DNA of 64,000 bases from Schmidtea polychroa (taxonomy: Eukaryota): contig CM097887.1 of assembly GCA_044892525.1 (NCBI GenBank), forward strand, positions 114,864,397 to 114,928,396, given 5' to 3'. The notes under the pieces were generated by a model. It had not been told where the DNA came from. It ran no database searches and was given only the letters and a program-made list of their open reading frames with translations. Position numbers and translations under genes: made by a program. This document shows positions 15,492-55,985 of the stretch, one piece after another. How positions within the stretch are numbered: position 1 is the stretch's first letter; every line of letters begins with the position of its first letter.

Positions 15492-18108
15492 CAGTAATAC
15501 CCGCACTTACGTACACCTTGGGACCGGAGCGTGTACGTAAAACAAAAATGTACGTAAAATGAATCTACTGCTTTAATTGATGAATAATATGTTTGAAATA
15601 AACTAAAACAATAAATATATAAATAAAAAGAAAAAGAAAAAGAGGGATATTATGCATGTAGTTTTATACTTTTATTTCATACTTTTTTATACTATATTTA
15701 ATACTTAACGTGTATTAAAAAAATAAAACAAAAACCAAATTCATATACATACATATTAAACAAAACTTAAAAATAAACATAAACTTCAAAATTCATCAAT
15801 ACATAATTTAAATATAAATAATGTTGTAATTCAAATTTAATTGCTCGATAACGTGGAGAATGATGTATCATCTTCATCTTCATAAGTGATGTAATCAACC
15901 GCTAAACGCTTTTTTTGCTGGTGAGTCAGGAGATGTAGATGAACTTATTGAAAAAGTCTTGCGACTTCCTGAAGTGGATGCCAAATTCCGATTTTCTTTT
16001 GATTTTGAGCTAGGTGATATAGATTTTGTAGCAAAAAATCTTTTAAAGAGGTTTGTTTACTATGTTTTTTCATTTCCCTGTATAATTCTGAATAACAGGA
16101 ATATGCGTCCATAATGTCTTTGTTAACCTTTGAACTCCTCTCAAAATCTGGATCGTATTTTTCAAAAAGAGCCATTCCATTTTGAAAACATTGGAAAGCA
16201 TCTGATAAAATTTTCAGGTTGTATCTGTTCATTTAATTCTAAAAGATCTTCATTTTTGAGAGGTTCATCGTAGGATGCTGCAAGTTGAACTACATCATTT
16301 GAATCTACTTCTAACTCAAGATGTTGCGCCATATCTACAATATTGCCAATGATTTCAGCGTTATTATCTTCGAAATCTTCCCTATCGTTTGTCTCCTGCG
16401 GAAATAATTTATTCCAGGCCTCTTTCATTGTAGAAACTGAAATATCATTCCAGGTGTCTCGAATTATTTTTATGCAATCTAAAATATTGTATTCCGCCCA
16501 AACCTTTTTTAAAACTTCCCTACCTGAATCTTCTTTACTGTCAATTGCAGCAATTATTTTACTGAATGTCTTTTTTAAATAGTTCAGTTTAAATGACGCG
16601 ATAACACACTGGTCCATGGGTTGAAGGATAGATGTGGTGTTTGGAGGTAAAAATTCAACTCGAATATTACCGTTGCCTAAATTTTGCGGATGACCGGGAG
16701 CATTATCGATAACTAATAAAATTTTATACGGTATTTTTCTGCTTCTACAATATCCTTTAACTTCAGCTGTAAACATTTGTTAAACCATTCTTCAAAAATA
16801 TATGCAGTAACCCATGCTTTAGGGTTAGATCTGTAGTAGACTGGTACTTTAGCTTTCGCATAGTTCTTTAACGCTCTAGAGTTTTCATAACGATGCAAAA
16901 GCATGGGTTTAAGTTTATACGTTCCTGCGGCATTACCACCTAATAAAATAGTAATTCTCTCTTTATTTACTTTATATCCTGACATAGTCTTTTCTTCTTT
17001 AGAAATAAACGTTCGAGCTGGCATCTTCTTCCAAAAAGACCTGCCTCATCGACATTAAAAATTTGGTCTTTTGTATATCCTCCTTCTTTCACAATTTTTG
17101 CAAGTTTTTCTGGATATATTTTTGCAGCCTCAACATCTGCAGCTGCTGCTTCACCGGTGACTTTAATGTTATGTAAGTTGTATCTGTTTCTGAAACGATG
17201 AAACCATCCACGACTAGCACAAAATTTAGTCTCGTTTGCGCCTTTTTTAACTTTTAAGTCATTAAACAAGCTTTGGGATTTACTTTGAATAATAGCCTGA
17301 CTTAAGGGTACGTGTTGTTTTGTTTGATTTTCTATCCAGATGACTAGTAATTTCTCCATATCTGCAACAAGACCATGTTCTTTTCTTATGATGGTACTAT
17401 TTATTGGTGTAGCATTTTTCACTGCAAAAAGAATTTTATCTTTGTTCTTGACTACAGTGTTTACAGTAGAACGTTTCAAATCTAGTTGGCGGGTTACTTC
17501 AGCTTGAGGAGTTCCGTCATCGCACATTCTAATTATCTTAACTTTGGCTTTCAGCGAAAGAACATTTCGAGTTTTTTTTAATTTTTTATCTGCCATTTCT
17601 TAGAGAAAAAAATTATTTTAAGAATTTAAAAAAAAATAAACGTATTTCTACTTACTGTGCAAGTTAATATTTCATAGAATTATTGTTCCAAGAAAAAAAC
17701 TATACATAAATCAAAATAGAAAAAAATATTCTTTATTCTTCTAAAGTCGAATTAATTATGAATATTATGTATTTATATTTTACAAAGGTTTTTATATTGA
17801 TTTATTTCTACAAAAGTTTCGTTTTTGTTCTTATTCCACTTTACATATTTTGTTTTGACTTGTTTCTACATGCATTCACTCATAACAAAATTTAGGTTTC
17901 ATAGAAATAATGTACACACATACTCAAACACTTTGTTACAAGTGTACATTCATAATTTATTATCCTAGTATTTTCCATAAATTGCAAAAACCAGAAAAAA
18001 TGTAAGTAAAAAAAGTACATGTACGGAAGTGTGAATCATATAATGGGCAAATGGGGACAAAAATGAGATGTACGTAAGTGCGAGTGTACGTAACACGGGG
18101 TATTACTG
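15492..18108 (-). mobile_element. Full-length Tigger/pogo DNA transposon
   Basis: TIRs CAGTAATACCC..TTACGTACAC at both ends; TA TSDs; encodes the transposase listed next. Confidence 0.92.
15945..17596 (-). pseudogene. Tigger-type (CENP-B HTH + DDE_1) transposase, frameshifted
   Basis: ORF pieces 16967..17596 (HTH, FCASRGWFHRFRNRY, IFNVDE), 16713..17024 (KERITILLGGNAAG), 16162..16776 (LLVIDNAPGHP, LQPMDQCVI) and 15945..16232. Confidence 0.9.
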
Positions 18109-28126: not shown

Positions 28127-29002
28127 CAGGGCCTGTTCTTCCTTAGGGCAAAATTGGTATTTCCCAAGGGCACCAAAGAGTTGGGGGCACTCATTTTGTT
28201 CTCAATATTTGAAAAAAAATTTTACAAAATAATTTTTTTTAAAGTTAATTGTATTTTATTTTTTATTTTTTGCTTTCTAAAATTTTTCTTTTAAATTCAT
28301 TAAATTCATTACAAAATCAATGTATGTATTTCTTTTCATTTGATGATATAGGTATACTTGTATCTTGTTGAAATTATATAAATAAGAAAAAAACACGTGA
28401 GAATTACGTTAGAATTGTGATTAGCTAACAAACGATTTACTAGGAAAAAACAGAATTTTAAAATCCTAATTTCTAAAAAAAGCTACATCTACACCAGATA
28501 ATTTGTGAACTGAATTTGTGAATACTGTAAAAATTATATAGAGTGGAAGGTTAGAAGATGGTCTTGATGTCCATTGAAAGGGATTTAATGAAAAAAATAG
28601 AAACAAAGGATGTAATTACCAAATTTGCTGCAATTAAATTACGAAAAGTTGTGTTGTAATCTTTAGCATGAAAGTCAACGAAATAAATATATTATAGACA
28701 TTATAATATATATTATTTGCTTCTTTTTTTATAAAATGTTTTGTGTTGTAGTGAGTATAGGGAGATGAGTTTATAATGAAAATAATATTTTTTCAATTCA
28801 TATGTTCGTATAATGACATTTAGAATATGTTCTTTTCTTTTGTTTATGACGGAGAAGCCGGTTATTTTTATTTTGAATAGCAAATACAACAGTTTGTACT
28901 TGGTGTCTTAATCTCTTAGATATGCAAATCAAATCCACTGGCATTTTTATATATGAGAATAAAACAGTACGTAGGGCGCCCCGTACTTATATGCCGGCAC
29001 TA
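28127..29002 (+). mobile_element. Decayed hAT (Tip100-like) non-autonomous element
   Basis: CAGGGCC... start, ...GCCGGCACTA end; internal C-terminal dimerisation stub LMSIERDLMKKIETKDVITKFAAIKLRKV* near 28560-28660; TSD not clear. Confidence 0.55.
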
Positions 29003-29808
29003 TATGTATTATATTTTTAAAAGTAAAAATACATTTGCGAGAAGAAAATCTATTTTCTGTATATCGTTTATTATTGTTTATTAAAGATTTAGCTAACTTC
29101 CAACTTTGAGTAATATTTTTACATCCAAAAAAACCACTTATAATCTTTTTCAAATTTATAAAATCTTGATTCTTTTTATATATAAAACTCATTATAATTC
29201 ACGCTTACCTTTATGAAATATTTGTTTAATCTTCTAATGTATGAAAATGGAAAAATTAAGTAATGCTAATCTCTAATTAACCATTCTGTTAAAATTCTTT
29301 ATGAAGCTCTTTTACTTTTATCATACCATTAAAGCAAAATTTAATTATCCGATATTTTTATTTGATTTTAAATTTTCAAATATTAAAAAATTTGTTTCAA
29401 TTTATTCAAATTTTCCTTTTTAAAACCTAATAAAAGTACAAATATTTTATTATAAATTTACTAATAAGTAAGAAAAAGTAAGAAAATTAATAAAAATTAA
29501 AATTAAAAAACACCCTTTAAAAATTTCTTATTATGTCAACATCATTAAATTTAATGTTATAATGTTTTCCACACTTAACAAGAATCAATTTGATTTTCTT
29601 TGATTTTTTACCATTAAAAAGTGAAATAATTTCCATGTGAAATCCTTGATTTGTTCAAGGTTTCCATCAAAGCTTGATTAATTCAGCTACTACTATATTT
29701 TTCAACAATATGTTACAACTTTTATTAATATCACTTTAAAATACAAGAATTTTCAAGAATCTATATCAAAGTAATTTTTCTTTCTATTAAAAGATAACCG
29801 ATCTCAAA

Positions 29809-30330
29809 GAGTCAATACACCAATTACGCGGTACCCATTTTACGCGGTTTGCTTTTTACGCGGTCATAAAAAATAATATTTTTTTATGATATCAAACATA
29901 TTTGGTGGCGTGTTTCAAATGCATATATTGCATAAGATTACTCAGATTTCAACTACCAGACGCCTGTAACCCACTCCATTACGCGTGCAGTATTGTGTTG
30001 TGGAGTGCATGTGTTTCGCTCAAGATTTTGCTCGTTTATACACCCAATTCCAAAATTTTTCATGCATTTTTCATTATGTGTTTTGTGTTTAAATATCGAT
30101 TTTTTAAATCTATTTCTAAATGAAATTGTATTTTTTATGCCTCGTTTTACGCGAGTTTCTGGAACCTATCCCTTTACTTTATATGAACTCGAAGTCTCGA
30201 TTTACGCAGATTTTTATTTTCTGGAACCTATCTATCATTTTTGTATGAATTTGAAGTCTCGATTTACGCGGTTTCGATTTGCGCTTTAGTTTCTTGGAAC
30301 GTATCTACCGCGTAAATCGAGGGATTGGTT
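29809..30330. mobile_element. Tigger/pogo-type MITE
   Basis: Degenerate TIRs AGTCAAT..TTACGCGGTA and TACCGCGTAAATCGAGGGATTG; internal repeated CGATTTACGCG and GGAACCTATC motifs. Confidence 0.65.
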
Positions 30331-30901
30331 TACCTCTAAATTTAACGAACTAAATTTAACAAGAAACTTTTTTAATACCATTAATAAGCTAAAGAATAAT
30401 TAGATTCAATTAATTTTGTTTTTCCATTCTTTGCAACCTTTTAGTCATTTTTAAAAAACATTTTCTTTGGCTACTTTTTGATAATTCGTAGTTGAATAGT
30501 GGTTCTATTTATTTAAATAAAATTATTTTTAGGTGAATTGCGATTTTGATATTGAAGGGCATGTCGAAATTGGATTGATTGTAATTGACAAATTAATTTA
30601 AAATATGAAATATTACATTTTCGCGAAATTATAGCTTAAAACCAATTCGGACAATTAATGAAAGTAAAATAAAATCTGATCCCACGTGTTTTTTAGATTA
30701 AAATAACAAGACACAACACAAATGAATTTAATTTACAAAACAGTAATTACAAAGATGCAATCATTCAACAATAACAGTTTGGTCGAAGAGCTCATTTTCT
30801 TAAGAACGACCGCCTTGTTCATTTTCAAATTCAAAATAACGCATAATCATTTTTTTTCCGAATAATAACAATTTTTCCGTGTCCATACCAGGAGATAATG
30901 T

Positions 30902-31174
30902 CATCATTGAACAACCTAATGGTCGCATCTCGGTTGATTGGGTAGAAAACTGCTTAATATCCGCAACAGAACGACTTATTATGTCGCAAGGCATTTCATA
31001 TCCATGTTTATATCAAAATCGAGCTGCTTCCATTTGTGCGCGACATACTTGAGATCGATAATCAGGGATCATACCAGTCATAACACCTCCAGTACTTTCA
31101 GTAATATTAAACAATCTTGTAGCTGAACTCTTCTCAATCATTTTATCTGGAACCTGTCTTTGTGTAGCTACACA
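30902..31174 (-). pseudogene. PSMA6: Proteasome subunit alpha type-6 fragment (middle of the protein)
   Basis: CVATQRQVPDKMIEKSSATRLFNITESTGGVMTGMIPDYRSQVCRAQMEAARF*YKHGYEMPCDIISRSVADIKQFSTQSTEMRPLGCSMM aligns by eye with PSMA6 (VIVTQKKVPDKLL..THLFKITENIGCVMTGM..DSRSQVQRARYEAA..YKYGYEIP.D.....ADISQ.YTQ.AEMRPLGC); one stop at 31013-31015. Confidence 0.9.
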
Positions 31175-31219
31175 TAAATTTGATCTCATATTATTCTTTT
31201 CTGAACACAAAACAATATC

Positions 31220-31498
31220 GATTCGGCCATTTTGATCTTGAGCAAATTTCAACAAATTTGTTTGATCCATATTCAACTCACCAGGTACAGATTGAACTAA
31301 TTGCCGGTCTCGAGATAATGTGATTAGAGAAAATCCATTACCCAGAATTTTAATAGATTTGATAGATCTGATAACATCGTCTTTACAAATAGTTTCTATT
31401 TCCATTTTGCTGCGGGTTCTATTCAACCTTGCCACTAAATCATCGAGATCCATCAATCCCCCGTTATATTTAGATGTTGCCATTGTAATTTCAATTAT
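31220..31498 (-). pseudogene. SNF8: ESCRT-II subunit SNF8/Vps22/EAP30 fragment
   Basis: IIEITMATSKYNGGLMDLDDL...DDVIRSIKSIKILGNGF...LVQSVPGELNMDQT..LKFAQ..NG matches SNF8 (IIEVCLA..HRNGGLI.L.EL...DDLIRAIKKLK.LG.GF...LIQSVP.ELNMDHT..LQLAE.NG); both termini missing. Confidence 0.9.
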
Positions 31499-31562
31499 TC
31501 AAAAAACCAATCGAATAAAACTCCATAAACAAAGAAGATTTCCATTTCCATGCACAATTTTA

Positions 31563-31624
31563 CGCGTCTGTGTGCGCACACAACCAAAAATACACAAGGA
31601 GAGCAAAAAGCGCACACAGACGCG
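31563..31624. repeat. Perfect 15-bp GC-rich inverted repeat (hairpin)
   Basis: CGCGTCTGTGTGCGC (31563-31577) and GCGCACACAGACGCG (31610-31624); overlapping 14-bp palindrome TGTGTGCGCACACA (31569-31582). Confidence 0.9.
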
Positions 31625-33372
31625 AGCATCGAATTAAACACGCCTCAAACTGCTTTATTCCTTTTAAACCTGATTGACACTTATTGCAAGAACAATACCC
31701 TAAAATACCTTTGATATTAACACTTGAACGAAGTTTATCGCAAACTGATAATGATAAATTCGGCTAACTTTGTCTTCCATTATATATGACTAAATTGCGC
31801 ATTAATCGACTTTTTTAAAGTTTTTATTTAAAATAAATGAAAAATATTATTTTTGACAGGCCATTATTATCTATGTTAAATTTAGGAGATTTTGATTTAT
31901 TATTGAAATAATTAATGCCTTCAACAGGATTTAAATTAATTAGTTTGTGTTTATGTAATTACTCTGTACAGGGAAGAGATCACTCATATCTTTTCCCCGA
32001 AAAATATTGATTTTTCCAATTTTTAATTAATTTTTGAACTTAAATTTGTATTTAAAATTTCAATATCTTCGTCTTTGAATCTTTGTGCCTTTAAATTTAT
32101 TTGCACTCACTTGTGTAACCACAATATTATTAATTTCAACCATTATATATTAGCTCCGCCTATATCCTCTATAAATGATAATCATTTCAGCGTTGAAAAC
32201 CGAAGTCATGTAATAGAAACAGAGTTGATTTTGTTTAAATCGAGTTAAAATTTTCTTTTCCTTCGAAATAAATGATCCAATTTAAATTGTTTTTAGCGTT
32301 TCCGATATACTTGACAATGTATAAATAATTTAGAAATATATCATCAAACTCTTTTCAGTCCAGCCAAAATTGCTCAAATAATATTTTGACATTTTATAAA
32401 TTAATATCATTTGAATTATTGTTATCGTTTTAACTAATTTTTCAATGAAAAAATCTTGTTTTTTATTTCTATTGGTTGAAAATATTCGTATTTTTTAATG
32501 ATATTAATTATTCTTAAAGAAAACTAATAATTAATCATTATAAATAATATTTTATATTTTTTGTTTTATTTTGTTTTGTTCTTTAAAATGACAGAATAGC
32601 TTATTCATTTCAAACAAAATTACTGATGTCATTTTCAGTTTCATCAGTTTCACCTAATTGGCAGCAAATGTAACATAAAAATGATGTTTTCTTATTATAT
32701 TTTCTGTTGATTGACCAATTTCTGACACAATCTGTCCGTTTATGAATTCGATTGTTCCAGACTTATGTTGTGTATATAGTATATATCAGTTTTCTACTTT
32801 TTTCACACTTTCTTTTCAGTCAAATCATTTCGGTATATTCAATATTTATTGCTACCTGACTTTCGATTGATAATATTGACAGTGCATTTAAACTCTTTTC
32901 TTTAATTGTTGCTCTTGTGAGGAATTTTCAGCTGAGAGTTAAATATTCCAATGATTTATCAAAATAATTTTAAATTGTAAATAATTGATTATTAAAATAA
33001 CTTTTAAATAATTTTTAAATTGGATTTTTTAAGTTGAAATTTTTGAATTAAAAATTAAAATAGATTTTTAAAAAAGAAGTTTTATTAATGAAAAATTTTT
33101 AAATAAATATGTTTTAAATATTGAAATATTTTGATAAAAGGTTTTGAAAATTTTTTTTTCAACGCTGAAAATTTGTTTAAAATTATACAATATGTGATAT
33201 AATAAATACTTGGGATTATGTCGTTAACTTTTGAACCGGATTTAAAAAATAATTTAGAAGATGTGTTAGCAGATTCTAATAACTCTTAAATATTTTTTTA
33301 GTATTTTTAGTAAGAAAAAAACTGCGTTCTACAGAAGCATTAGTGTCTGTGTACGGAGGGATATAGTTAATA

Positions 33373-34887
33373 TACTGCCCGACACTATTTTTAGCACAGT
33401 AAGAAATTTCGTTACAAAATCATGAAAAATCATGTAATAAATGAAATAAATTTTGTATGATTGTAATTAATATAGTAATACTTTTAATAATTATCACTAC
33501 TTAGACATATATTATTTTTTGTTTAAATAATATTTGAATTCTTAGGTTTTTTAAAAATTAAAATACGACACAATTTTTAGCACACTTTAAACTTTAAAGA
33601 TTTTTAAGTATTAATAATTTTAACCTATCTTTTTATACTACTTTATATGATTTTAATGTTTATAATAATTTTAGAATTGATTATGAGATCTCCAGATTTA
33701 AAGAAAGTTGCTATAAAGATGAAACTGGGCATGTCTAGATATGCTGTTAAGAATTTAGTCACCTACAAATAAGTGTTACATAAACGCAAACGTGGAAACA
33801 GAAGAAAAATAAGTAAAGCAGACGCGTTATCCATCAAAAGAGAAACTGCATGGATAACGAGAGCACAGGAAAAGTTAATTCGCCCAAGATCAAGAGAAAT
33901 TGTGGCCTAGCTGTATCAACAAGGACAGTACAAAGGTATATGCAGCTTGCTGGTATGAAATACGCAAAAAGTTATCACGAAATCATCCTATCTAAGAAAC
34001 ACAAGGAAGAAAGAATGAAAGTGATAACAGAATGGATTTCGACCAATCACATTTGGGAGAATACTATATTCTCAGACGAAAAAAGGTTCACACTTGATGG
34101 ACCAGATTGTTGGATGACATATATTCCGAAAACATCAAAATATGTGCGTAATATTCGGCAATGTCATGGAGGTGGAATTATGGTCTGGCTGATGATCCTT
34201 CCTAACGGACTTCTATCTTTCCACATGATAACTGGCAAATTTAAGTCGACCGATCACATTACCCTGTTGAAGACCTTTGCTGTGCCAATAATGAAAGTTA
34301 ACCTAAAGAGGAATTTTTACTTCCAGCAAGACAATTGCACAGTACACAAAGCACGGATTGTCCAAGATTATCTGAAATCAAGTTTATATATCAAGTTTAT
34401 ATATATTAGTTTATATATCAACGATTACATGGCCGTCACGAAGGCCAGACTTGAACATAGTTGAGGATGTCTGGAAGATGATTTCAGATATGGTTTATGA
34501 CGGACCGCAGTTCTTAAACATAGCTGTTTTAGAAAAAAAAATTACGGATGTCATATCTCTTATCAACTGTACCAGGCGACATAAAATTTCTATGCATCAA
34601 TAAGATTGAGACTGTGTAAAGTTCTGAGTAATCACGGAAATTTGTATAATTGTTAAGTATTAGTGTGTATAAATAAAGTGTGCTAAAAATTGTGTCGTAT
34701 TTTAATTTTTAAAAAACCTAAGAATTCAAATATTATTTAAACAAAAAATAATATATGTCTAAGTAGTGATAATTATTAAAAGTATTACTATATTAATTAC
34801 AATCATACAAAATTTATTTCATTTATTACATTATTCATGATTTTGTAACGAAATTTCTTACTGTGCTAAAAATAGTGTCGGGCAGTA
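33373..34887 (+). mobile_element. Full-length Tc1-like (DD34E) element with ~215-bp IR/DR-type TIRs
   Basis: Near-perfect long inverted repeats starting TACTGCCCGACACTATTTTTAGCACAG, each with an inner direct repeat CGACAC(T/A)ATTTTTAGCACA; TA flanks; transposase motifs IFSDEKRFTLDGPD, FQQDNCTVH, WPSRRPDLNIVE. Confidence 0.92.
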
Positions 34888-51016: not shown

Positions 51017-51609
51017 TGTAGTGAGCTTTTAGACGGTCTCATCATAATCTATATAAATCTTGGCTATGTATATTTCGCCGCTGTGATTCAATCATCACCA
51101 ATGACTTCGAAAATAAATAAATTAACAAATCGGTACACAAGCATCCGTCGAATTCCTGCGTCGATTGTCACTGGATCTCATTGGATCAAATTAACCTCTC
51201 TCAATTTAACCTCGATTATTTAAACTCTTACTGATAATGATATAATGATACATAAATTAAATGTCATATCTGCATTATTTCAAATGAATTTCTTTTTGGA
51301 AGCGGTTAAGCGGTTAAATGAACATGTAATTTTTTTAATGCAAATTATGTAAAATTAATTATATGATAAACTTATTATGAGGAAGTTTTATGATGAAGAA
51401 ATTTTTAAATTGAAAATTTTAAAAATTAAAGTTTAGATTAATTTTTAAAAAAACAAAATAAGAAGATATTTTAATTAAAAATATCTTCGTAGAAAATTTG
51501 TTTAAATAAGAAAGATTAAAGAAGATATAATTTGATTTTGATATTTATTGAAATAAAATTTATAGAAACAAAAACTGATTTTAATGTTTTACAGGATGAA
51601 CCTCCTAAT

Positions 51610-52656
51610 ATGGTGGCAGCGGTAAACACGGACGCAATCACCGAAAGATTGCTACCAAAGGTATTCTGCCAAGGGGACGATTTGGAAAAGTTCATTAAAA
51701 GATGCGAAATTTATTTCGACGCCAAGGGAATCACGCAGAAGAAAGACCAGGAAAGATTAACATCTTGCATGATTGATGAGGATCTCCTGGAAGTGTACGC
51801 TAAAACACTGAAAAAAGCCGAAGGATTCCAGGCTAGGTTGCGATTGGCATTCGATCGTGAAAGAGATGTTTTAAAGGATCTACAAAACTTGTTGAATTAC
51901 AAACGGAAGGGTGAAGAAATAGAAACGTATTTTAAAAAGGTGGAGGACCTTGTTGATAGGTTGTTCGAAAATAAAGAATTTACCAAAGAGAAATTAACAG
52001 CAAGGATGTTAATAGTATGTGCGGAGAATAAAGAAGTTGAGAAAGAAGTGATACTACGGAAGATAAAAAGCACAGAAGAAATAAAGGAAACATTAACTCT
52101 GATGGACAAAGTAGACAAGCAAAGAGAGCAAATAGACAGTATGAAACGTTACGCCAGAGTGGTCTATCAGGAACCACAGGGAAGAGTACAATACAAGAAG
52201 AAAGAACAGAGAGAAGAAAGTATCCGAAGAGAAATGCCAGAATGCTGGTTATGCCACAAAATAGGACACATGAAAATTGATTGTCCAATAAAAGGTAAAA
52301 TAGAATGCTGGACATGTCATAGAAGCGGACATATAAGTAGAAACTATCCAGATAAAAAAGCTCCAAGATGTTTTGGGTGTGGGAAAGAAGGTCATATAAG
52401 AAGATTGTGTCAGGAAATACGTTGTGAAAGATGTAGCAGAAATGGTCATAGATCCGAGGAGTGTTATACAAAGATGAGGCACGGGAGAGCGACGGAGAGA
52501 CAAAGATTCACGGGAAACAGATACAGTCGGATAAATGGTATCGAGGAAGAAGAAGAAAGGGAATCGTGTGTAGAGACAAATGAAGATAATTTTAGGAAGA
52601 CGTTCCCAAACAACAGGGCTCCACCAGTAGAGGAGTTGGTTGGAGCCATATTCTAA
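51610..52656 (+). CDS. gag: Gag with four tandem CCHC zinc knuckles
   Basis: Open frame from ATG 51610 (MVAAVNTD...); knuckles CWLCHKIGHMKIDC, CWTCHRSGHISRNY (last C mutated), CFGCGKEGHIRRLC, CERCSRNGHRSEEC. Confidence 0.9.
   Translation: MVAAVNTDAITERLLPKVFCQGDDLEKFIKRCEIYFDAKGITQKKDQERLTSCMIDEDLLEVYAKTLKKAEGFQARLRLAFDRERDVLKDLQNLLNYKRKGEEIETYFKKVEDLVDRLFENKEFTKEKLTARMLIVCAENKEVEKEVILRKIKSTEEIKETLTLMDKVDKQREQIDSMKRYARVVYQEPQGRVQYKKKEQREESIRREMPECWLCHKIGHMKIDCPIKGKIECWTCHRSGHISRNYPDKKAPRCFGCGKEGHIRRLCQEIRCERCSRNGHRSEECYTKMRHGRATERQRFTGNRYSRINGIEEEEERESCVETNEDNFRKTFPNNRAPPVEELVGAIF
51611..51622 (+). other. Primer-binding site, probably tRNA-Leu
   Basis: TGGTGGCAGCGG directly after the 5' LTR; complementary to the ...CCGCUGCCACCA 3' end typical of eukaryotic tRNA-Leu. 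Confidence 0.75.
52605..52647 (+). promoter_or_regulatory. -1 ribosomal frameshift signal (gag to pol)
   Basis: Slippery heptamer C CCA AAC in gag phase (52605-52611), 5-nt spacer, then hairpin GGCTCCA-CCA...TGG-T-TGGAGCC (52617-52647); the pol frame is -1 and open from 52596. Confidence 0.8.
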
Positions 52657-55600
52657 CAGAAAATTTGATGGGATATCCTCAAGGGGCAGAAAAGTGGGAG
52701 AATGTTGGAAGGGTAAGCGAGAAAGTATACAGGTTCCTAAAGAGAGAAATGTTTGAAGAGGAAGTGAAAAGAATTGGAACCATTGAAACGGAGCAGGTTG
52801 TTGAAATTTTGTATAACAGAATGCAAGGAAGGCCTAGTATAACAGTAAGGATGAATGGGGAAAATTTCGACTGTTTATTAGACACTGGGGCAAGAATCAA
52901 TGTAATGAGTGTGAACTGTTTCAACAAGCTACGAGGACAACAATTGACGAAAAGTGACGATAAGTTACGATGCGCAAACGAGAGTACGATCGAGACAATA
53001 GGAAAAACGAAGGTGCAAGTAACCATTGGAAATGTTTCGAAGTAAGTTATATTCATTGTGGCGGAGAAAGTGACACCAGACGTGATTGGAGGAATCGAAT
53101 TACAAGAAACATTTGGATTTAGACTGTTAAAAATTAAAGATATCGAGGCTAGTGAAAAAGACAAGAACTATATTTGTAACATTGAAGCAAAATTTGGCAG
53201 AAAAATAAAGGATGAAGAACGATTGATACGAGCGTTGGAGCAGTTAAAGATCAATGAAGATAGCAAATTAAAGGAAATTATAACAAACAGTGGAAACGTG
53301 TTTATGGCAGATAAATGGGATGTGGGTCCACACATTTGGTAAAACACAAGATAGTTACAAGAGGTGAGCCGATAAACATAAAACCATATCGCCAACCACT
53401 AAATTTGGAATCAAAGATTGAAGAAGCAATACAAAATTTGTACGAAAATAGAATTATACGGAAATGTAACTCTCCATGGAGTACACCGCTAATATGTGTA
53501 TGGAAAAAAGAGAAAAAGTATATTAGAATATGCTGGGACTTTAGACAGCTGAACGCGGTAACAGAGAGGCAGGCATTTCCAATGCCAAACATAGACGAGA
53601 TGTTGGATTTGTTAGAAGGATCCGTCTTTTTCAGCTCAATCGATCTAGGTAATGCATATTACCAAGTGGAACTAGAAGAAGAATCACAGGAGAAAACAGC
53701 TTTCTCAACAAAGAACGGACAATATTGTTTCAACAGAATGCCGTTTGGAATTGCAGCAGCACCAGGTACGTTCCAAGAAATGATGACAAAAGTATTAGGC
53801 AAAATAAAGGGAGCAATGGTGTATTTGGACGACATCTTGATTTATTCAAGCAGTAAAGAGAAACACTATACAATACTCGGAGAAGTGTTAAAGGCGATTG
53901 AGGAAGCAGGCCTAAGGATTAATCCAGAAAAATGCCAAATAATAAAGGAAGAAATCAGATTCTTAGGACACTTAATCAGCAAGGAAGGAGTACAGACAGA
54001 TCCATCTAAAATTCAGGCCATACAGAACTTTGGGAAGCCTAATTGCGTAAAGAAACTCCGAAGCTTTTTAGGTATTTGCAATTATTATAGAAGATTCATC
54101 AGTGATTATGCAAAGAAGGCAAGGATGTTAGAACAATTATGTAGCGGACCAAGTAACAAAAAATTAGAATGGAGTGAAGGAACGAATAGCGTGTTTGAGG
54201 GATTGAAATTAGCACTCACGACGGCGCCAATCTTATGTTTTCCGGATCTGAAAAAGGAGTTCATTTTAGATACCGACACTAGTTTCGATGCCATTGGAGC
54301 AGTACTTTCACAAAGAGATAAAGATGGAAAGGAAAGAGTAATTGCGTATGGATCACACTCGATGACGAGCCACGAGAAAGGATATTGTATTACAAGAAAG
54401 GAACTATTGGCGGTATATTATTTTTGCATTCATTTTAAGCACTATCTCTACGGAAGAAGATTCACGCTCAGGACAGACCACAAGGCAATCACGTTTATGA
54501 TGACAACCAAGAAGCCGATTACTTCACAATTCCAAACATGGATCAATTATTTGAGCAGTTTAGATATAAGAGTAGAATACAGAAAGGGTATTAATCACCA
54601 AAATGCAGATATGGGGTCGAGAACTAAATGTGACACGTGTGTTCAATGTCAAATGGCCCACGAAGAAGCTAAGAAAAGAAAGATAAAAACAAGATTACTA
54701 GACTCGATCAGAGAAGAGGGAAGAAGCAACATCCAACATGGAATTGTAGAAGAAGTACGAAAGAAAACGATGATACCTGAAAATGAGTTACAAGAAACAA
54801 TAAAGGAAATACATAGACTATTGTGTCATGCTGGAGTCGAGAAGATAGCCGATTATATGAAAGATAGATATGTTGGAAAACACCTGTGGAGTAAGATTCA
54901 GGAGATTGTTCGAAGTTGTGAGATTTGTCAAAAAACCAAGGCTTTAACAATAACAACGAAAGAACCAGTGAAAAGACAAGATTCGAAGGAAATGTTCGAA
55001 ATTATATTCGTGGATATATGTGGACCGTTGGCAGAAACAAAAGGACGTAAGAAGTATATATTGGGCATAATAGATCAGTATAGTAAGTATCAAGTCTTGA
55101 CAGCGATAACAAAACAAGACGAAGAAACAATAAAGAAAACGATTTTAGAAAAGTGGATTTTAAGATTTGGATGCCCAAAGGAGATAAGAGTTGATTGCGG
55201 AAAGGCGTTTGAATCAGGAATGATGAGAGAATTCACAAAGATGCTAGATATTAAACTATGTTTTTCGAGTCCATACCATCACCAAACAAACGGTCAGATA
55301 GAAAGACAATTCAGGACAATACGGGATTTTATAAATGCTACTTTACAGGATAGAAAGAAGACGGATTGGGCAGAGATATTACCAGAAGTCGAATTCACTT
55401 TAAATGCAACCAAACAAAAAACGACAGGGAAAAGCCCGGCAGAGATAGTTTTTGGGAAAAGGATTAGCAGGGAAAAATGGTACGGGTCCAAAGAAATACC
55501 GATAAAGGAAGAACTAGAAGAACAAACAAGGAGAAAATTCAATGTAGGAGAAGAAGTATTAGTAAAAGTAGAAACACGCCACAAAGGCCAGGACAGGTAT

Positions 55601-55707
55601 GAAGGTCCGTACAAAGTAATAGAGAAAGTGCATGACAGACGATATATCTTAAGAAATGAAGATGGAAAAAGGATCGAAAGAAATGTGGAAAAACTTAAAA
55701 ATTTCTT

Positions 55708-55718
55708 AAGAAGGGGGA
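55708..55718 (+). other. Polypurine tract
   Basis: AAGAAGGGGGA directly before the 3' LTR. Confidence 0.85.
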
Positions 55719-55985
55719 TATGAGGAAGTTTTATGATGAAGAAATTTTTAAATTGAAAATTTTAAAAATTAAAGTTTAGATTAATTTTTAAAAAAACAAA
55801 ATAAGAAGATATTTTAATTAAAATATCTTCGTAGAAAATTTGTTTAAATAAAAAAGATTAAAGAAGATATAATTTGATTTTGATATTTATTAAAATAAAA
55901 TTTATGGAAACAAAAACTGATTTTAATGTTTTACAGGATGAACCTCCTAATACTTATTATGTTAGGAAATCATTTGTTTATTTAA

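Follow-up and report, generated by a model that had tools for sequence, protein, structure and literature searches.

On the minus strand of a 64-kb stretch of DNA from Schmidtea polychroa (hereafter the window, 64,000 nucleotides in full), parts of two unrelated housekeeping genes, SNF8 of the ESCRT-II complex and PSMA6 of the proteasome, follow one another in a single reading frame. This arrangement raises the question of whether the locus is a gene, a cassette of captured gene fragments or part of a mobile element, and of why one frame should run through pieces of different origin.

Gene pieces and their boundaries

The minus strand from 31498 to 30803 forms one reading frame that is interrupted once, by a stop at 31015-31013. 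Upstream of the stop, the frame matches positions 102-202 (of 219) of the Pfam profile EAP30 with an E-value of 5.9e-11, and the Proteasome profile is matched on both sides of the stop (E 2.7e-6 before it and 1.2e-4 after it; profile positions 17-110 of 189). The best matches among solved structures are to residues 88-171 of human SNF8 (E 7.5e-14) and residues 49-100 of human PSMA6 (E 5.8e-12). A preliminary description, made from the sequence without database searches, had claimed an in-frame SNF8-PSMA6 chimera that consists of two internal gene fragments and is interrupted by one stop. These three points were confirmed by the significant profile and structure matches: the SNF8 and PSMA6 pieces are real, are internal to their genes and share one frame.

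The boundaries of the pieces were set with the contigs of four public sequencing runs from the same organism, aligned on window positions 29000-33000 (the label of each run as RNA or DNA is the guess of the tool). A contig of the host SNF8 mRNA (RNA, 675 nt) differs from the window by a single mismatch in 301 positions, and SNF8 sequence extends past both sides of the match. Beyond 31498 this contig encodes ...GDFYYHLAIR, and a companion contig encodes LNWSEERSQQ below 31196. A contig of the host PSMA6 mRNA (RNA, 569 nt) shows 19 mismatches in 261 positions and continues with parental sequence on both sides (...VGIRGNNCDV above 31171 and YDNEMDKPLL below 30893). The loose ends of the two parent mRNAs therefore divide the frame into SNF8 (31498-31196), a filler (31195-31172) and a PSMA6 core (31171-30893), and the lengths of all three are multiples of three (table 1). 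Both genes had thus been named correctly at the outset, and it is the limits that had to be moved: the SNF8 piece, first placed at 31220-31498 (~93 codons), begins and ends at 31498 and 31196 (101 codons), and the PSMA6 piece, first placed at 30902-31174 (~91 codons), occupies 30893-31171 (93 codons). What had been taken for an unrelated linker of 15 codons turned out to be mostly SNF8 (the residues DIVLCSEK belong to it), leaving at most 24 nt of true filler. The ~34 further open codons reported behind PSMA6 are indeed open to 30803, with the qualification that the final 13 nt are flanking DNA beyond the repeat described below. Both flanks of the PSMA6 core show a ragged similarity to the parent in which indels leave the length unchanged, so the filler may itself be degenerate PSMA6, as is weakly suggested by loose ends of 30 letters.

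Ends, copy number and relatives of the repeat unit

The chimera lies within a unit that has the termini TGT...ACA (5'-TG...CA-3'), which form a short, imperfect inverted repeat (TGTT..AACA), and that is flanked by a 5-bp duplication, AGGCG, within the 4-6 bp usual for LTR elements and a G+C-rich 5-mer in a window of 26% G+C. In run X1 the summed contig depth is 254,155-1,340,805 inside the unit (~30876-31679) versus ~270-570 in the flanks, and the same ~10^3-fold step between unit and flanks is present in run X5. Thousands of distinct contigs align there, and by summed depth, although this is only a rough proxy for copy number, the family numbers roughly a thousand copies. Error-free single-copy contigs end at 30844 and resume at 31612, which is 29 nt inside the repeat at k = 31. 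The TGT...ACA ends, the 5-bp target duplication, the ~10^3-fold depth and the single-copy flanks together identify 30816-31640 very probably as a solo LTR of a very abundant LTR retrotransposon. Pieces of host mRNA would have been brought into this LTR by template switching, and the frame would have been kept by translation of the LTR. The ends and the duplication are compatible with, and not diagnostic of, a BEL/Pao element. As a solo LTR, the window copy is without gag, pol, primer-binding site (PBS) and polypurine tract (PPT); no meaningful terminal inverted repeats (TIRs) or direct repeats were found around the cassette, no direct repeats inside the unit, and no poly(A) at the 3' end of the LTR.

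Two further copies, L001 and L002, are contained in ENA metagenome assemblies (ERZ2272692, ERZ2272703) and encode the predicted proteins P0001 and P0017. Homology to L001 begins at the TG of the LTR, and homology to L002 stops at its CA. Over the coding part the identity is 95.6-96.2%, and both have an identical SNF8-filler-PSMA6 junction. At position 31015 nearly all depth differs from the window in four out of four runs, and in both L001 and L002 the codon is a sense codon, which makes the stop a private mutation of the window copy. The suggestion of a young chimeric retrogene at this locus does not hold: the unit is a high-copy LTR, and the copy in the window, with its private stop, is an ordinary solo LTR in decay and not a gene.

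Within the 64-kb window no other copy of the unit and no full-length element was found, nor was a full-length copy found in the public contigs examined. In JGI metagenome contigs the exact junction 29-mer and a protein-guided search each gave 0 matches, and a protein search with the 70-residue part that follows the stop gave none. Among the 577 hits of a whole-library HMMER search there was one chimera cluster (P0001 and P0017); the remaining hits are ordinary SNF8 or proteasome proteins with identities of 62% or less, which means that the searched collections do not contain SNF8 and PSMA6 of the host itself. Copies of the LTR frame have been deposited already as predicted proteins, P0001 and P0017 being listed with EAP30 and Proteasome domains. 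For annotation, an apparent fusion of two genes that is in fact a repeat present about a thousand times is expected to lead to many false "SNF8-proteasome" gene calls in the host genome.

The 5' part of the LTR is closed by an in-frame TGA (31501-31499) immediately before the SNF8 piece. It is only weakly similar to L001 and L002, except for the terminal TGTTT and a GGAGTTYTMTTCGATT block. The hairpin in this part has a predicted energy of -36.5 kcal/mol (z -4.7; 0 of 200 shuffles equal it) and is located 16-78 nt from the minus-strand 5' end of the unit. It is absent from L001 and L002, the reads carry several alternative sequences at this place, and an Rfam search of 29500-33500, which includes the hairpin, gave no match. 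An interpretation as a conserved stem with variable loops was dropped because the reads equally fit replacement of the whole segment in other copies.

Table 1. Coordinates of the repeat unit and its parts in the window, in minus-strand order.
Feature	Position	Strand	Description
Target-site duplication AGGCG, upstream copy	31641-31645	minus	5' flank ...GTTTGAGGCG, then LTR
Solo LTR (very probable)	30816-31640	minus	825 bp; starts TGTTTAATTC, ends GAAAATGAACA
LTR 5' part	31499-31640	minus	varies between subfamilies; high read depth
Perfect 15-bp G+C-rich hairpin	31563-31624	minus	CGCGTCTGTGTGCGC / GCGCACACAGACGCG, 32-nt loop
SNF8 (ESCRT-II) piece	31196-31498	minus	303 nt, 101 codons; by the flatworm gene structure, exon 2 in full plus 9 nt of exon 1
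Filler (NNMRSNLC)	31172-31195	minus	24 nt at most, in frame; bracketed by loose ends of the parent mRNAs
PSMA6 (proteasome alpha-6) core	30893-31171	minus	279 nt, 93 codons
In-frame stop	31013-31015	minus	private to the window copy
Open tail of the LTR frame	30816-30892	minus	first ~30 nt with ragged PSMA6 similarity; last ~45 nt LTR backbone common to L002
Target-site duplication AGGCG, downstream copy	30811-30815	minus	LTR, then AGGCGGTCG...

The flanks of the insertion differ between runs. In X5, which comes from a different study and differs by SNPs around the insertion, the contigs of the flanks reach only to ~30815 and restart with 21 unaligned letters before 31641, whereas those of X1 extend 29 nt into the LTR. 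The insertion (30811-31645) may be polymorphic in the X5 strain, or the LTR ends may be different there.

Frame preservation and transcription

The chimeric frame runs from 31498 to the last base of the LTR, with abundant stops in the other two frames, and at least 228 codons, mostly derived from the host, sit in the frame of the LTR. For the window copy alone, the chance that the frames match and that both the filler and a 25-codon tail are open is ~0.03, an estimate that uses the frequency of stop trinucleotides in the window (7.3%). The earlier remark that a preserved frame is unexpected for random capture stands. The junction between PSMA6 and the tail is located elsewhere in L002 (window position 30994), where the frame is again kept and reads through the LTR end, and the loose ends at 30994 and 30996 are likewise in frame. 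Preservation of the LTR frame points to translation of that frame, not to a working SNF8-PSMA6 protein.

The main alternative regards the SNF8 and PSMA6 peptides as selected cargo: the element would express a truncated ESCRT-II/proteasome fusion with an effect on the host, such as that of a decoy or dominant-negative that aids particle assembly or blocks degradation. An open frame maintained across independent junctions would fit such cargo, both parent genes belong to pathways used by retroelements, and the dN/dS point estimates for the window copy against L001 and L002 (0.45 and 0.63) are below 1. However, L001 against L002 gives 1.06, and the values between the three copies (0.45-1.06 on 17-19 changes) are not significantly below 1 and cannot separate selection from neutrality. 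Moreover, both fragments are internal and cut through the folds of their proteins, as the partial coverage of the two profiles indicates, and PSMA6 is cut at differing places in L002 and at the loose ends 30994-30996 and 31017. Cuts through the folds and variation of the pieces from copy to copy argue for selection on the open frame and not on the peptides, and we consider selected cargo unlikely.

The preferred reading, in which the frame is kept by translation of the LTR, can be taken one step further. In active copies translation would begin within the LTR and read through the host scraps to the element's own protein, so that descendants would be left only by captures that are in frame and free of stops, with the host scraps as passengers. 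Frame would then be kept across the junctions because translation in active copies starts inside the LTR. Under this proposal the LTR would be an in-frame landing pad in which scraps of host mRNA persist only if the frame is kept, which we put forward tentatively, as a possible rather than a probable explanation. The candidate start is the first ATG of the chimeric frame in the window copy (31483-31481), and a different ATG is found in L001. If the pieces are located in U3, they would escape translation upstream of Gag. Were the landing-pad proposal true, the family would constitute a natural high-throughput shuffler, and its transcribed and translatable mosaics of exons from housekeeping genes would number about a thousand.

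RNA data across the junction, which the preliminary description had envisaged as a check, come from run X10 (labelled RNA). In this run a contig covers the junction (31142-31227) at a depth of about 10, and the parent mRNAs have depths of about 40. The comparably abundant neighbouring repeat at 29804-30339 has zero depth in X10, which argues against carry-over of DNA as the source of the junction contig. In run X6 the LTR repeat and the neighbouring repeat are present in DNA-like proportion, which is uninformative on transcription.

Capture through RNA and known systems

The nearest genomic SNF8 genes are those of a metagenome eukaryote (L003) and of the cestode Mesocestoides corti (L005), both with 52% protein identity. 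Each has three exons, with introns at RIIE/IC and CVxK/L (the slash marks the intron). The SNF8 piece in the window begins 9 nt before the RIIE/I position, crosses it without an intron and ends within one base of the flatworm exon 2/3 boundary. A snail SNF8 gene (L006) has further introns within the region, all of which the window lacks. If the host SNF8 gene has the flatworm structure, from which the host intron position is deduced, the SNF8 piece was copied from spliced RNA; the absent flatworm intron and the single mismatch in 301 positions to the host SNF8 mRNA both argue for capture through RNA. The exact end at the exon boundary may be due to chance (about 1-2%); alternatively, and speculatively, it hints at a splicing intermediate as the template. 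The loose ends of the two parent mRNAs, 30 letters each, showed no clear microsimilarity at the junctions; the matches around the filler (AATAAT and ACAT) are a weak likeness in A+T-rich sequence.

The description of the locus as a gene-fragment capture cassette is supported and the cassette is intronless. Among the mechanisms that had been suggested for it, template switching during reverse transcription is the best, given the SNF8 piece that is without the flatworm intron and all but identical to the host mRNA. The reverse transcriptase of the element would have switched template onto co-packaged host mRNAs, by which the pieces would have entered the LTR. Sequence in the LTR part of the RNA would reach both ends in the next cycle and would spread with each insertion.

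The two pieces differ in abundance and in distance to their parents. No segment of the family is more abundant than PSMA6, for which bin 31010-31143 is covered 3-5 times as deeply as the SNF8 part, and in the window copy the PSMA6 segment is about 7% from the host mRNA, compared with 0.3% for the SNF8 segment. Based on this higher depth and greater divergence, the old core is probably PSMA6, to which one subfamily later added SNF8. Loose ends reveal variants in which PSMA6 breaks off at 31017 or at 30994-30996 and a different continuation follows. The SNF8 part of L001 and L002 is about 3.6% from the window, and the first 26 nt of the SNF8 piece are replaced in them; either the L001/L002 lineage mutated faster or recombination with SNF8 mRNA refreshed the lineage of the window copy. 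Such a refreshment of the SNF8 part is the explanation we lean towards for its single mismatch in 301 positions against 19 in 261 for PSMA6. The likely sequence of events would thus be a capture of PSMA6, followed by the addition or refreshment of SNF8 and, for the copy in the window, by loss of the internal part through LTR-LTR recombination and subsequent decay. RNA contigs of X6 and X10 share PSMA6 down to 31017 and continue with an unrelated coding-like sequence (...KSDIGMDKI); this transcript variant probably represents a further LTR mosaic, in which PSMA6 is joined to another partner gene.

Three other origins of the chimera were considered. A LINE-type reverse transcriptase could have made a young chimeric retrogene or pseudogene that stands alone, and such a product would also be intronless and could unite two parents in one frame. 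However, the unit has no poly(A), its duplication is 5 bp and not long and variable, and its ends are TGT...ACA. Both pieces are internal, whereas LINE chimeras carry the 3'-terminal part of an mRNA, and the ~10^3-fold depth with sharp unit boundaries belongs to a repeat and not to a stand-alone copy (the junction shared with L001 and L002 excludes depth from unrelated sequence). An origin of this kind is very improbable.

Capture at the DNA level by a Helitron or by a Pack-MULE or other TIR transposon, which had been among the initial suggestions, did not survive the analysis of the ends and is likewise judged highly improbable. Such elements do join fragments of host genes, and a strong hairpin is located near one end of the unit. 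However, TIRs are absent beyond the short TGTT..AACA, with no TIR pair around the unit, and the duplication is 5 bp, not the 8-10 bp of Pack-MULEs. Helitrons insert between A and T, make no target duplication and have a hairpin about 10 nt from the 3' end, and the unit has TG/CA ends in place of 5'-TC and 3'-CTRR, with its hairpin on the side of the minus-strand 5' end. In addition, the SNF8 piece has no intron at the flatworm intron position. A plus-strand Helitron with the hairpin near its 3' end was also considered and was ruled out by the TG/CA ends and the AGGCG duplication. Finally, an assembly chimera, conceivable in a high-copy repeat where assemblies are error-prone, is excluded for all practical purposes by the identical junction in two independent ENA assemblies and in DNA and RNA contigs of at least four runs from several studies, and by error-free single-copy contigs that span both boundaries between flank and LTR.

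The capture of host mRNA by LTR elements is known; unusual here is the combination of capture into the LTR, high copy number and a frame that was kept across independent junctions. LTR-mediated retroposition produces multi-gene, partial and intronless chimeras with 2-26 nt of de novo filler through template switching guided by microsimilarity, and the chimeras are co-transcribed and re-transposed (Tan et al. 2016, Genome Res, PMC5131818). Ty1 chimeras in yeast and the maize element Bs1, which carries parts of three host genes, are examples. The unit in the window resembles these in having partial, intron-free host mRNA from several parents within LTR-retrotransposon sequence, short filler at the junction, and a chimera that is co-transcribed and further amplified as a non-autonomous element. 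It differs in that the pieces are located inside the LTR itself and do not replace internal gag/pol sequence, so that every LTR, solo LTRs included, carries them. It also differs in having reached ~10^3 copies and in the single open frame that unites the pieces and continues past the end of the LTR.

Three further systems share single aspects with the unit. Cassandra TRIM elements reportedly contain 5S rRNA gene sequence inside both LTRs, and there, too, host gene sequence is fixed in the LTR and is duplicated and spread with each LTR; the Cassandra sequence is non-coding, a Pol III gene together with the promoter, whereas here fragments of protein-coding mRNA are kept in frame. In yeast Ty1 the start codon of Gag lies within the 5' LTR, a precedent for a main reading frame that begins in the LTR. 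Ty1 has a few codons of its own there, in contrast to the at least 228 mostly host-derived codons of the unit, the translation of which is putative. Cytopathogenic pestiviruses carry inserts of host ubiquitin and other mRNAs acquired through RNA recombination and thus also gain in-frame host mRNA fragments by copy-choice; unlike the LTR element they are RNA viruses, and their inserts create a functional cleavage site. The LTR family offers a natural system for template switching, for the tolerance of foreign sequence in a Gag leader and for chimeric coding sequence in bulk.

Several other repeats and transposable elements are present in the window. The neighbouring repeat at 29804-30339 is of very high copy number (depth 80,000-260,000 vs. 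about 400 in its flanks) and contains direct units of ~62 nt (TTTCTGGAACCTATC...TTACGCGG). On the other side of the LTR, depth jumps about 10^3-fold at 32886, where another abundant repeat starts (32886-33000 and beyond) upstream of a Tc1/mariner-like ORF (33850-34464) with matches to the Pfam profiles HTH_Tnp_Tc3_2 and DDE_3, both under the curated cut-offs. A pogo/Tigger-type transposase on the minus strand at 16162-17596 is broken up into three ORFs (Pfam CENP-B_N, HTH_Tnp_Tc5 and DDE_1). A Ty3/gypsy-like element on the plus strand at 51532-55723 contains a zinc-knuckle Gag (374 aa) and a pol ORF of 802 aa, and its region has the highest G+C content and the strongest skew in the window.
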